From positions 21,512-85,511 of the forward strand of contig CALSCP010001494.1 of assembly GCA_943704425.1 (NCBI GenBank): a stretch of DNA of 64,000 bases, written 5' to 3'. The notes under the pieces were generated by a model, which saw only the letters and a program-made list of their open reading frames with translations, was not told where the DNA came from and did no database searches. Below, one piece after another: positions 24,673 to 40,117 of the stretch. The DNA is from Ministeria vibrans ATCC 50519. Lineage: Eukaryota; Protista; Filasterea. Both the position numbers and the translations under genes were made by a program. Each line of letters opens with the position of its first letter. Position 1 is the first letter of the stretch.

Positions 24673-26870
24673 TTAAAAAGATGATACAGTCGAGCGGGAC
24701 TCATGAATGGGCGAAAGAGAAGAGGGTGCAAGACCATGGCGAGAGAGGTAGGAATACGAAGCGAAAGAGAGGTCGGATGTGGACGCGGAGGGAGTCACAG
24801 ACACCGTCGAGGACGGAGCAAGGTAGCGCAAAGAGATTTGATCAGCCTGAAGTATTAAGAATGAGAAGTATGAGTCTTGTGGTGGGTGTGCGTGTGTGGG
24901 TGGGTGTGGCTTACGAGAGCAGATTCATTGTCATCGTCGTCAAACGCGACGGTGTGGCACACAGAGAGGGACGAGTCAGCGGCATCAACCGTTGTTGAAG
25001 AAGAGCCACAGGACGAAACAGAGGAACAAAAGGAGTGGGTGTGAAGGGCATCCGTAATGGAGCTGCATCCGCTGATGTACTTCTCGGGCGAGTACATAGC
25101 GGGTCGGACACTGTCATCGGCACAGACACCAGAGGAATTGACTGATGCAAATGAGAGCGGTGGGGCGGGTGCTGGGACAGTGGAGGGCCGTGGTGTAGAT
25201 GGTGCAACAGTGGAGGGCAGCGAGGCGGATGGCGTGACACTGGAGGGCACACAAAGCACTGTGCCCTCCTGTTCCACTTCTACGTTGTCATTGTCTTCGT
25301 GGTCGTCTTCGTCATTCGTGTCAGACGTACACTCCCCGAAGCGCTCAATGAGCCTGTCGAAGAAGGCATCGTCGTCTACTGGCGTATCCGCCTCTGTGTC
25401 ACAGGCACTGGCACTGGAGCCAACGGCAGTCTCGTGGGAGTGTTCTGATGACGCGCCAGCAACGACCTGCTGTGCCAGCTGCACTCGCAGCTGCTCCATC
25501 TGCTGTTGCAAATACGCAATTTGGTGTTGCTGCAGCGCAATAAGAGAGCGGTAGTCGGTTGAGGGAGGAGCGACGTCGTCGTGCTCTGCGCTGGGAGAAG
25601 CGGGTGGAAAGGCGTTGTTGCGGCTGGTGTTCTCGGAGGGGACAGCCACGGCGGGGAAAAGACTCTTGGTGGGTGGCGGAGGAGAGACAACAGGTACAGG
25701 AAGACGACTGTGGGCACGGAGATGGGCGTGAAGAGCGGCAGGTGACATGGGTGCGACGGTGATGGTATCGGGGTCGGCAAGGGACACGTCGAGAGCAGAG
25801 GGGCCGGAGGGGGCAGTGCTGGAAGGCGACGGCACTGGACAGGCACGACGAGCGGGCGAGTCAGGTTGTGTCGAGGCAACGAGGGCAGGAATCGCAGCGG
25901 CCACTGAACTTGGCGGCGCGGCAGACACTGGCTCAAAGGCAAGTTTGCAAGGCTGTGATGTCTCGAGTACAACGGGCTCAGTACCACAGAGAATGAGCGA
26001 ATCAAAGCTGCTTGATGAACAGCGGTACTCCATAGGACGACACTCGTAGGCAATAGGGTGACAGTCAGGCGAAATGGTGAGCACAAGGAAGGCGTCGTCG
26101 TCTTGGTGTGTCACGCGTTGCTTGAGCGCTGTGTGATGGAGGTAGCGAACGCACGCCGCCCAAACACGGTGAGAATGGATGTTGGACGTGTCTTTGGTCC
26201 ACACGCCCACAAGAGGCAGAGAGTAGGCGAGCGGATCGGACTCGAGCACAAGCAAAAGATGGTGTGACTGGTCCATCGAGAGAAAGCCCGTCTGAGGCGG
26301 AGCGTCGGCCAGCAGCGGAGCCAGCGACGACGACGACGACGACGGCTGTGTAAGGTAGCGAGCCAGTGCAGTAGGAACAATCATGGGGGCGCTGAGAGGC
26401 GCAAGACGAAAGCCTGTGGCGGGCATGACGCAACGGGCGTCGAGAGCGTTGTCAGCGAGGCGAATGGAGAGGGCCAGGTAATTTGTGGCGACGAGGGGCT
26501 CGATGAGGTCGAAGCGGCGCCGTAAGACACTTCCAAGTTCAAGTACAACGTCGTCAGAGGCGTACGCTGAGTTTTCGAGACGCACTCGGAGTGAGACGCG
26601 CTCAACGGATTCTGCGTTTTTTGAAATTCGCGCCGACGAGTCAAATTGGTCGATAACTAGTCGCAGCGGCACTGACGTGTCGTCGACGATACGACCTGAG
26701 AGAATTAAGGTGTCTTCATGCGTCGTCTGGAGGTGTTCGCGCAGCGTGTCGACAAGGGAGGCGTCGAGTTGCAAGTGCGGTCGATGTTCGAGCGCAGTCA
26801 CCACCGTCGGCTGGCCCTTGACGAGACGATCCCACAGAGCCGAGCGGGAGACCGGGAAGTGCCAACTCAT
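24673..26870 (-). CDS. STIL: Centriole duplication factor STIL/SAS-5
   Basis: STIL_N motifs FPVSRSALWD, GFLSMDQSHHLLLVLESDPLAYSLPLVGVW and VWAACVRYL; central coiled coil; spliced last exon gives STAN-like QISLRYL..DLSFASYSYLSRHGL. Confidence 0.9.
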
Positions 26871-27208
26871 GCTAAAAAACCAAGACTCGAGACAGTTCTA
26901 GTAGCAAATTAATTTTGAGTTGATGATAATAAAATATAAATTGAAGAAGAAAAAGACATTTTTGAGTTCACTCGGCGTTCCCTACTTCACTTACGATCTT
27001 CTTAACCCCCACTTAAGCTTTGCCCTTTACCTTGCGCTATTCTGGCACTGAGTAACCTTAGTTTGATTTATAACCCGATCGGTTGCCAAGCATACTCCCG
27101 TTAGGCTAGACAGCGCCCAAAGTCACCAAACGTCAAAATGAAAGTCAATAGACAATAACTAAATAACACTTTTGTTTTCGAATTTTCGGCGCCAAGTCCA
27201 ACCACCCA
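26871..27208. promoter_or_regulatory. Putative bidirectional STIL/CENP-W promoter
   Basis: Divergent starts ~340 bp apart. MYB-like CGGTTG (27080) and CCGTTA (27098), CHR-like TTCGAA (27177), E2F-like TTTTCGGCGCC (27183). Confidence 0.5.
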
Positions 27209-37039: not shown

Positions 37040-37227
37040 ATTCAAATTTATTAAAGAAATTAAGAAAAAAGGCAAAAATGAAAAAACGTTTGAAGTTTGA
37101 ATTTCGTATTTTTTCTTTCGCTAATCGCTTCATTTATTCCTAATTATTATTATCAATAGTTTTAACCGTTTTTCTTGAAGTCTTGTCGGTAGCCGTCGCG
37201 TACTAGGCGGGAAAAGCAGCACGGACG
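37040..37227. promoter_or_regulatory. Putative bidirectional SPICE1/CPAP promoter
   Basis: ~190 bp. CHR-like TTCAAA (37041) and TTTGAA (37089, 37096), MYB-like TAACCGTT (37163), E2F-like GGCGGGAAAA (37206). Confidence 0.55.
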
Positions 37228-40117
37228 ATGGAGCGATACATGCTGTCACGGTACCAGAAGACATCGCGTCAAGCGCATCTTACTCTCCGTCTCTTCTTCC
37301 TGCCCCAGCGACTCCAACGATGTACGATTTGGCCCGCCGTCTGTGTTACGACGCCTTGCTAGTGTTGTCTCCTACGTATTCCGCTCTTCTCACTCTTCTT
37401 TTCCATTTTTTTTTTTGCTCTCTTTTTGCGAATACTATTTTTTTTTTGAAACAAAAAGGTTTCTGACAGTCGACGGAACTCACCGACGAAATCAGGCTCG
37501 GCAAGGTACCGTGTCTCGCGTATACGTCTATACATGTGCCCAACGTTGTTCTCCCGCCCCCTCTGTAGACCGGACTACTCCTCGAATGGCGCTGTCGGAC
37601 CCGTACGGTTTGGATTGTCGTGCGACGTCTCACGTTTTGTTATGTTTGTCTGTGGTAGAGGTCTGTGCACGACGAGCACGCCCGTCTGTCGGCCGATGAC
37701 CGTCCCATTCGCAGTGCGATTGACCCCACTGCCCGAAACAGCCTCGCGGCATTCGAAGGGGTCGTCAAGAAGAGCCAGGCAGCGCACTCAGCCCCTCACC
37801 CCCACTCGGCGGCGTCGTCCAAGGGGGCGCGACCATTCCTACGCAAGGGCCAAGGCATCCAACGCTTTCAAGGCCCACCCGCAAAACGCTACAGGCCGCC
37901 GCAGGACGAACGGCCGCGCTCGCCACCCGACAACATAGACGCGCAATATGCTCAACAATCGCAACGCCCTCAACCAAGCAAAGACAGGCTGCATGCCGCA
38001 GAACACGAGCGACAACATCAACAACAGCAACAGCACGAGCGACAGCATCAACAACAGCAACAGCACGAGCAACAACATCAACAGCAGCAACAACACGAGC
38101 GACAGCATCAACAACCGCAACAGCACGGGCGACAACATCAACAACAGCAACAGCACGAGCAACAACATCAACAACCGCAACATCATCATCAACAACAACA
38201 TCATCAACAACGTCATCAACAACAACAACATCATCATCAACAACAACAGCAACAATCGCAATACCCTTTTGAATACGACGACGACGATTTTGAGGAGGAG
38301 GAGGAGGAGGACGATGACGACGGAGGGTTTCCCGGTCAGGCAGCACAGACAGGGCGGGAGCTGTTCCGTGCGTGGGATCCTGAGGAGTCGTTCACGTTGC
38401 AGCACGCCGAGAAACAGCGACTGTCTGAAGCGCAGGAGCTCGAGGAGTTTGAGGCAATGGAACGTTTGGCACACTCGAGTGTTTTGTCTTCGTCAACGGG
38501 TGCGGACGATGAGTTTGCCGCGCTGCGAGGCGCACCGCCATTTCCGAAAGGCCTTCAGCAGCAATCACAACCGCAGTCGGGTGCAGCATCGCCACCGCCC
38601 ACTAGTGCACTGACGGCACGTGTGTTTGGTGGAGGAGACCGCAAAGGCAAACGACCGCTTGTGCCACAACAACACGCCGAGAGAGGCCCGACTGACGTGG
38701 CGGTGGCTGTGGCTCATTTGACTGCGCGTCCCTCAGCGACAGCGACAGGTGGGGGTGCGTTGGAGGAGCGCCTGGGCGAACTCAATCGCGAAATTGAGCG
38801 GTTCAAACGGGAAAATGCGGCATGTGAGGCACTGCGACGCGAACGAGAGACTGCAGTGAAGCAGCTGAAGGAACAGATGGCTTCGTTTGAGCGCACGCGT
38901 GTGGCGGAACTGGAAAAGATTGAGCAGATGCGAAAGACTGAGACAGACCGACTGAAGCGCGAGCGGCGCACAGTAGATCGTTATGCCAAAGCCAATCGGG
39001 TGGTGGAAAAGGGGGATCGAGAGGAGCTGGAGCGCGTACGGGGAGTGTTGAAGGAGCGGGAAGCGGATTGGAAGGAGCAAGAGAAACGCCACGGATTGGC
39101 GGTGGGACGGTACAAGGACCGTGTACAGACGCTCATGGCACGCAACGGAGAGTTGGAGGAGACAGTCAAGGGTCTTGAGCGACAGCTGGTGGAAATGCGC
39201 GATGCGGTCAGCTCCAGTGTGGTGGGGAACGGCAGAGCAGCTGGTCGCAACCGTAAGAGTGCAGAGACTGGTGCGGCCGTGTCGTCAAGCAAGAGCGGCA
39301 GTCAGGGCACAGACATGGCTGAACCTAGCAATGGGATAGTGCGTGAAGTGGTACGCGACGACGGCAAGGTAGAGCAGCACATGGGCGATGGGAGTGTGCT
39401 GGTGCTGTTCCCCAATGGCACGCGCAAGCGTATTGAACGCGACGGTTCGTCAAGCGTTCTCTTCTTCAACGGCGACCGCAAGGACAGCCGACTCGACGGC
39501 AGTGTCCTGTACTTCTACGCGGAAGCGAACACGACGCACACGACGTATCCCGACGGGAGAGAGGTCCGCATTCCATGTGCACTCTTTTTCTCGATATCAG
39601 TTTTGTTCGTGTTCTTATCGCGTCATTGTTGGTTTCTTTGTCTTTTTCTTTATGTAATTAGGAGATTCGCTTTCCCAACGAACAAATTGAGCGCACGTTT
39701 AGCGATGGCACGAAGGAAATTGAGTTTCCTGACGGATCGCGCAAGCGAGTGCTTGCGTCGGGTGATGAAGAGACTGTCTTTCCAGACCAGACTGGTACGC
39801 TCTATCGAAGCACTCTCAGCATTGCACGCGAAACAAATTTTGTCTATGCGTAGTTGAAAGAGTGGCGCGAAACGGAGACCGCACCATTGAATTGCCTAAC
39901 GGGCAGGTAAGAAGAATCCATCCCCCCTACCTTTGTAGTCACCCTGGTTCGGATTGTGTAGCGGGAAGTGCATACGCGGGAGTACAAGCGACGGGAGTAT
40001 CCCGACGGCACGGTGAAGACAGTGTTTGCATCGGGGCGGCAGGAGACGCGCTATGGCAGTGGACGCGTGCGGGTGCGCGATGAGGCCGGGCGCATTGTCC
40101 TTGACACGCGCTCCTGA
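37228..40117 (+). CDS. CENPJ: Centriole protein CPAP/SAS-4 (5' exon structure uncertain)
   Basis: [19 protein letters not shown] and a long coiled coil; TCP/G-box domain ([60 protein letters not shown]). Confidence 0.92.
38003..38255 (+). repeat. Coding 30-bp tandem repeat ([10 protein letters not shown] ~x6) decaying into poly-Q/H
   Basis: CACGAGCGACAACATCAACAACAGCAACAG units. Confidence 0.9.

Follow-up and report, generated by a model that had tools for sequence, protein, structure and literature searches.

STIL and CPAP in a contiguous neighbourhood with candidate kinetochore and centriole genes in Ministeria vibrans

Gene content of the locus

The 64 kb stretch of Ministeria vibrans DNA analysed here (the window, which corresponds to positions 21512–85511 of contig C1494 in an assembly of 29.7 Mb distributed over 2860 contigs) is gene-dense, holding about 27 genes or roughly one every 2.4 kb. 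Positions 24673–40117 (15.5 kb) are occupied by seven consecutive genes, in the order given by an earlier note on this DNA, which assigned five of the seven to cell division: STIL, CENP-W, CENP-C, SPICE1 and CPAP. The assignments of STIL and CPAP, which lie five genes apart on the same contig, proved solid, while those of CENP-C and CENP-W are plausible by eye and that of SPICE1 is weak. The genes of the group are not paralogues of one another, as had been stated. The members of the group and the spacers shared by two pairs of them are as follows.

24673–26870, minus strand: STIL/Ana2 orthologue with a STIL_N domain (exons 24915–26870 and 24673–24846)
26871–27208: divergent promoter between STIL and the CENP-W-like gene (338 nucleotides, nt; 39% GC), with TTCGAA at 27177 beside GGCGCCGAAA at 27184–27193
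27209–27666, plus strand: CENP-W-like gene of 82 residues (predicted exons 27209–27304, 27351–27476 and 27640–27666), delineated by eye, codon usage and splice signals
28487–30101, plus strand: CENP-C-like gene of 452 residues (predicted exons 28487–29647, 29770–29878 and 30013–30101), delineated by eye and codon usage
35683–36784, minus strand: SPICE1-like coiled-coil gene of about 330 residues (exons at least 36706–36782, 35890–36608 and 35683–35841), from RNA contigs and a subthreshold match to Pfam SPICE
36785–37307: divergent promoter between the SPICE-like gene and CPAP (no more than 525 nt), with TTYGAA at 36809, 37041, 37089 and 37096 and TTTCCCGC at 37207–37214
37308–40117, plus strand: CPAP/CENPJ/SAS-4 orthologue with Tcp10_C (main open reading frame, ORF, from 37659; G-box at 39342–40075 over four exons)

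The STIL_N profile (PF15253) matches the ORF at 24855–26870 (minus strand) with an E-value of 5.6e-34 and 118 bits against a cut-off of 27, aligning residues 146–313 with profile positions 160–322, and this match firmly confirms the STIL assignment made in the earlier note. The last intron of the gene is 68 nt long (GTAAGC...TTCAG). Examination by eye points to a coiled-coil-like stretch in the central part of the protein, 'YRSLIALQQHQIAYLQQQMEQLRVQLAQQ', and to a STAN-like last exon in which an acidic run is followed by 'ISLRYL' ('DDDDNESAL/ADQISLRYL', the slash being a division in the original reading). Word-indexed homology searches, a method blind to divergent relatives and uninformative on absence, returned nothing for the STIL ORF or for exon 1 of the CENP-C-like gene.

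In CPAP, the Tcp10_C profile (PF07202) scores 42.3 bits (cut-off 36) on the ORF at 37665–39857 (plus strand), and a genome-wide search located five Tcp10_C/G-box repeats at 39342–40075, the only ones in the genome. The G-box is 45–59% identical to that of vertebrate CENPJ (E 2e-21) and, in a BLASTP comparison with reptile CENPJ, the coiled coil displays 32% identity over 207 residues (E 5e-25). An N-terminal 'RPFLKRGEG' motif, which we take to be tubulin-binding, aligns with 'RPFLKRGEGLTRF' of the reptile sequence, and both proteins are collinear, with N-terminal motif, coiled coil and G-box in the same order. The CPAP/CENPJ call is firmly confirmed by these profile and alignment results. Both STIL and CPAP are true orthologues of proteins that bind each other directly.

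The introns at the 5' end of CPAP are supported by RNA contigs, and the exons at 37308–37505 and 37569–37602 appear to form an untranslated leader. Upstream of the conserved N-terminal motif, the CPAP frame lacks an in-frame AUG, the first one lying about 280 codons into the ORF. The 5' exons (37308–37505, 37569–37602 and perhaps 37236–37249) contain AUGs in other frames only, which open upstream ORFs 48 and 98 codons long. The missing upstream AUG could possibly be explained by a start at a non-AUG codon, by an exon that was not seen or by an alternative isoform. Further into the gene, positions 37990–38270 encode a long Gln/His-rich repeat followed by an acidic run.

The CENP-W-like gene starts with an ATG at 27209, and its predicted introns, 27305–27350 and 27477–27639, display the splice signals GTAGGG..TTGTAG and GTAAGA..CTTTAG. 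For exon 2, codon usage ranks the predicted frame best of six (+12.1 bits, compared with a mean of 9.9 for genuine coding pieces of this length) and also disfavours read-through of the second intron. Read by eye against the family patterns, the product looks histone-fold-like and is probably CENP-W. A six-frame search of the genome with PF15510 gave nothing at this locus and only chance matches elsewhere, and no better CENP-W candidate was found in the rest of the genome. The weak PF15510 matches on two other contigs (C949 and C942) were rejected as CENP-W; they sit in unrelated ORFs, one of which is BRCT-like by eye.

The CENP-C-like gene lies 820 nt past the CENP-W-like gene. Its first exon, of 387 codons, looks disordered, and the last 50 residues of that exon together with the two short exons read by eye as a single cupin-like segment that includes '...FYIPYGASYKLENVGSGTARVVFWAF'. 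The predicted frames of the three exons are each the best of six by codon usage (+52.8, +9.6 and +5.3 bits). The splice signals of both the CENP-W-like and the CENP-C-like genes agree with those of nine introns verified by RNA contigs in the window, which are short (48–97 nt) and begin with GTA in all cases except one, where the first three bases are GTG. As read by eye against the family patterns, 28487–30101 probably encodes CENP-C. The six-frame genome search gave no match to PF11699 at this locus, and a PDB match of the last exon to concatenated RecA constructs was discarded as a summing artefact (5–6 bits per repeat). Both the CENP-C and the CENP-W identities are plausible, the assignments by eye constituting a lead and not a test.

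The SPICE-like gene is expressed and spliced, as revealed by RNA contigs that define introns at 35842–35889 and 36609–36705. Its first exon, of 26 residues, matches positions 15–37 of the 409-position Pfam SPICE profile (PF15678) with 16.8 bits and an E-value of 0.0044, and the SPICE1 call of the earlier note thus falls short of the profile cut-off of 27 bits. Of the 24,736 families in Pfam, SPICE is nonetheless the only one reported for this exon, which it matches at the collinear N-terminal position. An Atlas look-up of exon 2 gave no usable match. The gene is possibly, and at most weakly on these comparisons, a SPICE1 orthologue.

Contiguity across the assembly gap

The assembly is interrupted between the SPICE-like gene and the neighbouring HECT ligase gene, within the seven-gene run, by the following feature.

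35605–35659: assembly artefact, intergenic, consisting of an N10 gap (35605–35614) and 45 misplaced bases (35615–35659) at a poly-G/C tract

No reading frame spans the gap: both flanking genes are on the minus strand, the SPICE-like gene ending with its stop codon at 35683–35685 on one side and the HECT gene starting with its ATG at 35446 on the other. The join of 35659 to 35660 is absent from the contigs of all four sequencing runs placed on 31901–37900, and in all four the bases 35615–35659 are found in a different contig. They look like a repeat from elsewhere that was mistakenly set at the edge of the gap. The contig that holds them is about 1.7 times deeper and has two copies of the stretch approximately 140 nt apart.

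In an independent DNA run, one contig opens with poly-G and TAC and then goes on from 35660, the left flank of the gap ends in the matching '...GGGTACAAAGCAGGAAA', and contig depth is alike on either side. DNA of the window is present, besides the organism's own sequencing runs, in algae and seawater metagenomes. A metagenome scaffold from an independent assembly (L016, 1503 bp), reached through its homologue of a SPICE-like exon, follows 36954–35660 at 99.3% identity, joins 35660 straight to 35604 with an exact overlap over 35604–35584, and continues to 35365. Since this scaffold crosses the gap, the two sides are contiguous and their join is no chimera; both the N10 and the 45 bases at the poly-G/C tract are artefactual. 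A chimeric join at this point, one of the possible refutations that the earlier note had named, is ruled out by the scaffold; the contigs of the four runs, none of which bridges the gap, were not decisive alone. Exact-pattern scans of metagenome contigs with a pattern left of the gap and another in exon 2 of the CENP-W-like gene gave no match.

Divergent promoters and the origin of the grouping

STIL (minus strand) and the CENP-W-like gene (plus strand) are arranged head to head, as are the SPICE-like gene (minus strand) and CPAP (plus strand). RNA contig depth is zero over 36901–37300, an untranscribed spacer between the SPICE-like gene and CPAP. The two divergent promoters and that of the CENP-C-like gene together contain seven TTYGAA motifs in 1.26 kb, compared with 0.86 per kb in the other AT-rich DNA of the window, and 23 of the 43 TTYGAA sites in the window fall within 24.0–38.9 kb. 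E2F-like elements (GGCGCC/TTTCCCGC) are present in the promoters of the group and also at SAS-6 and CEP120, two centriole genes located elsewhere in the genome; TTYGAA is likewise found at the 5' end of CEP120, and twice within the 550 nt upstream of the SAS-6 ORF. These motifs are compatible with promoters of the cell-cycle genes homology region (CHR)/E2F type, as judged from their sequence. They are not strong evidence, because such elements are expected at genes of this kind wherever they are located.

The observations are best accommodated by a genuine contiguous neighbourhood, composed of two divergent pairs and CENP-C, with ordinary cell-cycle transcription from shared promoters, to which we assign a probability of about one half. 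STIL and CPAP would each head a divergent pair with a short shared promoter, and the two bidirectional promoters and the CENP-C promoter, all with CHR-type TTYGAA and E2F-like elements, would drive cell-cycle transcription, such that partners needed jointly in S/G2/M might be made at the same time. The genes may possibly be co-regulated through these shared promoters. No sign of an operon or of other physical coupling was seen at the locus.

Several known systems offer parallels. Like the divergent histone pairs (H2A–H2B and H3–H4), the pairs described here consist of non-paralogous cell-cycle partners placed head to head over a few hundred bases of promoter. The proteins encoded by a histone pair, however, form heterodimers with each other directly, and such pairs are conserved in many eukaryotes, while the members of each pair at this locus are not known to bind each other, except perhaps SPICE1 and CPAP, indirectly via CEP120. 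In yeast and animals, bidirectional promoter pairs and co-expressed neighbourhoods bring together adjacent, often divergent genes of related function without forming an operon; these are usually two-gene statistical tendencies, whereas the present run comprises up to five centriole or inner-kinetochore genes. For such a run, a full-text search found no paper containing at least three of the terms STIL, CENPJ, CENP-W and 'bidirectional promoter'. To our knowledge, outside metabolism eukaryotes seldom have clusters of genes that are functionally linked but not paralogous. The presence of TTYGAA and GGCGCC/TTTCCCGC elements in the three promoters and at SAS-6 and CEP120 recalls the DREAM/MuvB–CHR and E2F control of animals, from which it differs in that the elements are known here from sequence alone and their enrichment is modest.

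The gene products also recall the STIL–CPAP–CEP120–SPICE1 module of centriole assembly and elongation, in which the N-terminal part of STIL has a binding site for SAS-4/CPAP and its C-terminal part a STAN motif. Orthologues of STIL, CPAP and CEP120 are present in this genome. Relative to that module, genomic proximity alone is new, SAS-6 and CEP120 being located elsewhere and the SPICE1 assignment being weak. CEP120 was identified by PF12416 (48.8 bits, E 1.4e-11) in an open frame of 1181 residues on contig C1419; it is a known partner of SPICE1 (PMC4554922). SAS-6 is on contig C636, where DNA ligase IV (3706–6808, minus strand) and SAS-6 (8585–9952, plus strand) lie head to head about 1.8 kb apart. 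A CENP-T candidate occupies approximately 3626–4893 on the minus strand of contig C1568 (4951 bp) and consists of a long acidic disordered ORF, an intron and a histone-fold-like tail, '...FVGQAMDDVEAFSEHGRRRVSSIADVELLLRR', that ends in DVELLLRR; PF15511 gives it 23 bits, below the cut-off of 28.1, and it is probably CENP-T. With this candidate and CEP120 in the genome, CENP-W and SPICE1 would have partners in this organism. The top matches to PF15511 were rejected as CENP-T, being histones H4 and H3, and a match on contig C379 is TAF9-like.

A number of results weigh against the proposed neighbourhood. SAS-6, CEP120 and the CENP-T candidate map to other contigs, where their identified neighbours (DNA ligase IV, a WD40 protein, UDP-GlcNAc 2-epimerase, a TPT transporter, thiamin pyrophosphokinase, a DAO oxidoreductase, Vps35 and Yip1) include no cell-division gene. 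The TTYGAA enrichment is marginal, with 3.3 sites expected from local composition in place of the seven seen (P 0.047), and the window shows no enrichment of the strict E2F pattern TTTSSCGC (16 sites against 13 expected). The exons of the CENP-W-like gene (32 and 42 residues), each searched alone, gave no Pfam (E up to 10), PDB or Atlas match, and the cupin pieces of the CENP-C-like gene (52, 36 and 28 residues), searched exon by exon, gave no match to PF11699 or any other Pfam family (E up to 10) and no meaningful one to PDB. The CENP-C motif binds the CENP-A nucleosome; its canonical form (a basic stretch followed by ...P..[YF]W) was not seen in exon 1 on inspection by eye against the consensus, that exon having only 'KKRRRQRVVDMW', which is shorter and has no proline. 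Exons 2 (239 residues) and 3 of the SPICE-like gene do not match the SPICE profile, and a phmmer search of exon 2 against 1.84 billion proteins returned a single sequence (P0001), a copy of this very gene with 98% identity from a metagenome scaffold and the one member of its cluster. Over all homology searches with proteins of the locus, the only matches returned were vertebrate CENPJ and this same metagenomic copy.

Whether such a grouping exceeds chance was considered with a model in which about 12,500 genes, 100 of them in a centriole and kinetochore class, are placed at random and runs of seven genes are inspected. At least two of seven genes belong to the class in some run in 99% of random genomes and at least three in 9%, and the probability falls to about 1e-3 for at least four and about 6e-6 for at least five; for the named pair STIL–CPAP inside one seven-gene run it is also about 1e-3. 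The verdict depends on the three unconfirmed calls and on the number of windows and themes scanned, and neither of the figures of about 1e-3 is beyond chance across the very many windows and functional themes inspected, a further point against the neighbourhood as proposed.

The strongest competing explanation, a serious one that falls somewhat short of an even chance, is that the genes are mostly as called and were united by neutral rearrangement in a compact genome, each with its own cell-cycle promoter and the grouping without function. The dispersal of the other core centriole and kinetochore genes among unrelated neighbours, the two unrelated housekeeping genes in the middle of the group and the slight motif excess all agree with it, as does the fact that, with two firm calls only and a very large number of windows examined, the counts are those commonly reached by random placement. 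On the other hand, the firm pair consists of direct binding partners, acceptance of CENP-C and CENP-W makes the run a roughly one-in-a-thousand event and that of SPICE1 a far rarer one, and a head-to-head arrangement with very short spacers is the layout most prone to co-expression.

The earlier note had gone further and proposed a functionally clustered, probably co-regulated locus, a reading that the results support in part. Adjacency, contiguity and the divergent pairs with CHR/E2F-like elements speak in its favour, and the scattered partners and the modest enrichment (P about 0.05) against it. A selected neighbourhood, in which STIL, CENP-W, CENP-C, SPICE1 and CPAP are co-driven, centriole duplication is coupled to inner-kinetochore assembly and the arrangement is kept in related protists, appears unlikely. 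What lies next to SAS-6, CEP120 and the CENP-T candidate lends no support to a genome-wide habit of clustering centriole genes; since these three genes are dispersed, there is no general clustering habit and the locus is not a complete module. The grouping described here may possibly be of selective value, which falls short of a demonstrated selected cluster.

Less probable still is that all three uncertain genes, those resembling CENP-W, CENP-C and SPICE1, encode lineage-specific or unrelated proteins, which would leave STIL and CPAP as a single coincidence: none of the three has profile, structure-database or homology support, the SPICE match spans 23 residues and does not reach the Pfam cut-off, and the CENP-W and CENP-C resemblances are readings by eye, but the exon-level searches were low-powered, the introns cutting the CENP-W-like and CENP-C-like domains into pieces of 28–52 residues, the SPICE match is unique among Pfam families and collinear, size, exon frames and codon usage suit real small genes, and the other five calls made in this stretch by the earlier note were all correct. 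The profile searches that the note had called for failed at the exon level for CENP-W and CENP-C, while their reading by eye and the preference of codon usage for the predicted frames keep both calls plausible.

If co-regulated and conserved, the neighbourhood of two divergent pairs and CENP-C would illustrate, in compact natural form, how shared promoters can organize cell-cycle genes. Its two short bidirectional promoters would then be convenient for work on cell-cycle transcription in a protist, and it would supply candidate orthologues of CENP-C, CENP-W and SPICE1 in a lineage where sequence searches miss them. If the adjacency arose by chance, the locus would offer no more than two annotated genes, STIL and CPAP, and one repaired assembly gap.

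Intervening and flanking genes

Two further genes complete the seven-gene run, and a third flanks it.

23587–24402, minus strand: HMCES-like gene (Pfam SRAP, E 2e-31), which flanks the group and is not counted as a member
30160–31799, plus strand: bacterial-type asparaginyl-tRNA synthetase gene, NARS2-like (tRNA-synt_2, E 9.5e-55 on 30819–31799; TIGR00457 asnS, E 1.6e-97)
31901–35446, with its 3' end beyond 31901, minus strand: HECT ligase gene (HECT, E 1.2e-42 on 32273–34879; five introns from RNA contigs)

The NARS2-like gene, whose product is a mitochondrial-type Asn-tRNA ligase, and the HECT gene are unrelated bystanders between the two divergent pairs. Their families, as named in the earlier note, were borne out by the profile matches; the closer identity of the ligase is presumably UBE3C/Hul5-like, a reading that derives only from its N-terminus, 'MFFDG...SLGGA...RRRLPAAIRIQ', which resembles that of UBE3C. 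The HECT gene is expressed and spliced. The NARS2-like gene begins 59 nt past the stop codon of the CENP-C-like gene, and is tightly convergent with the HECT gene, its ORF ending at 31799 and the HECT exons reaching at least 31901; a single RNA contig spans both.

The HMCES-like gene directly adjoins the group, as the earlier note had described. Three TTYGAA motifs are located at 24083–24363, in the first 320 nt of its coding region, near the start.

The remaining genes of the window are unrelated to the group and include those for a RhoGDI/SH3 protein, MFS transporters, a sulfatase, a DUF707 protein, a HECT–ankyrin protein, a RasGAP, Pex13, Rrp4 and a KA1 kinase. An open frame of 771 residues at 20672–22987, without a Pfam match, encodes a highly charged low-complexity sequence with KAEAKV repeats and E/R/K-rich stretches. 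Downstream of CPAP lies a lipase-like gene with GDSL-type motifs by eye, within which long (GT)n/(CA)n microsatellites occur at 40560–40640 and 41380–41440.

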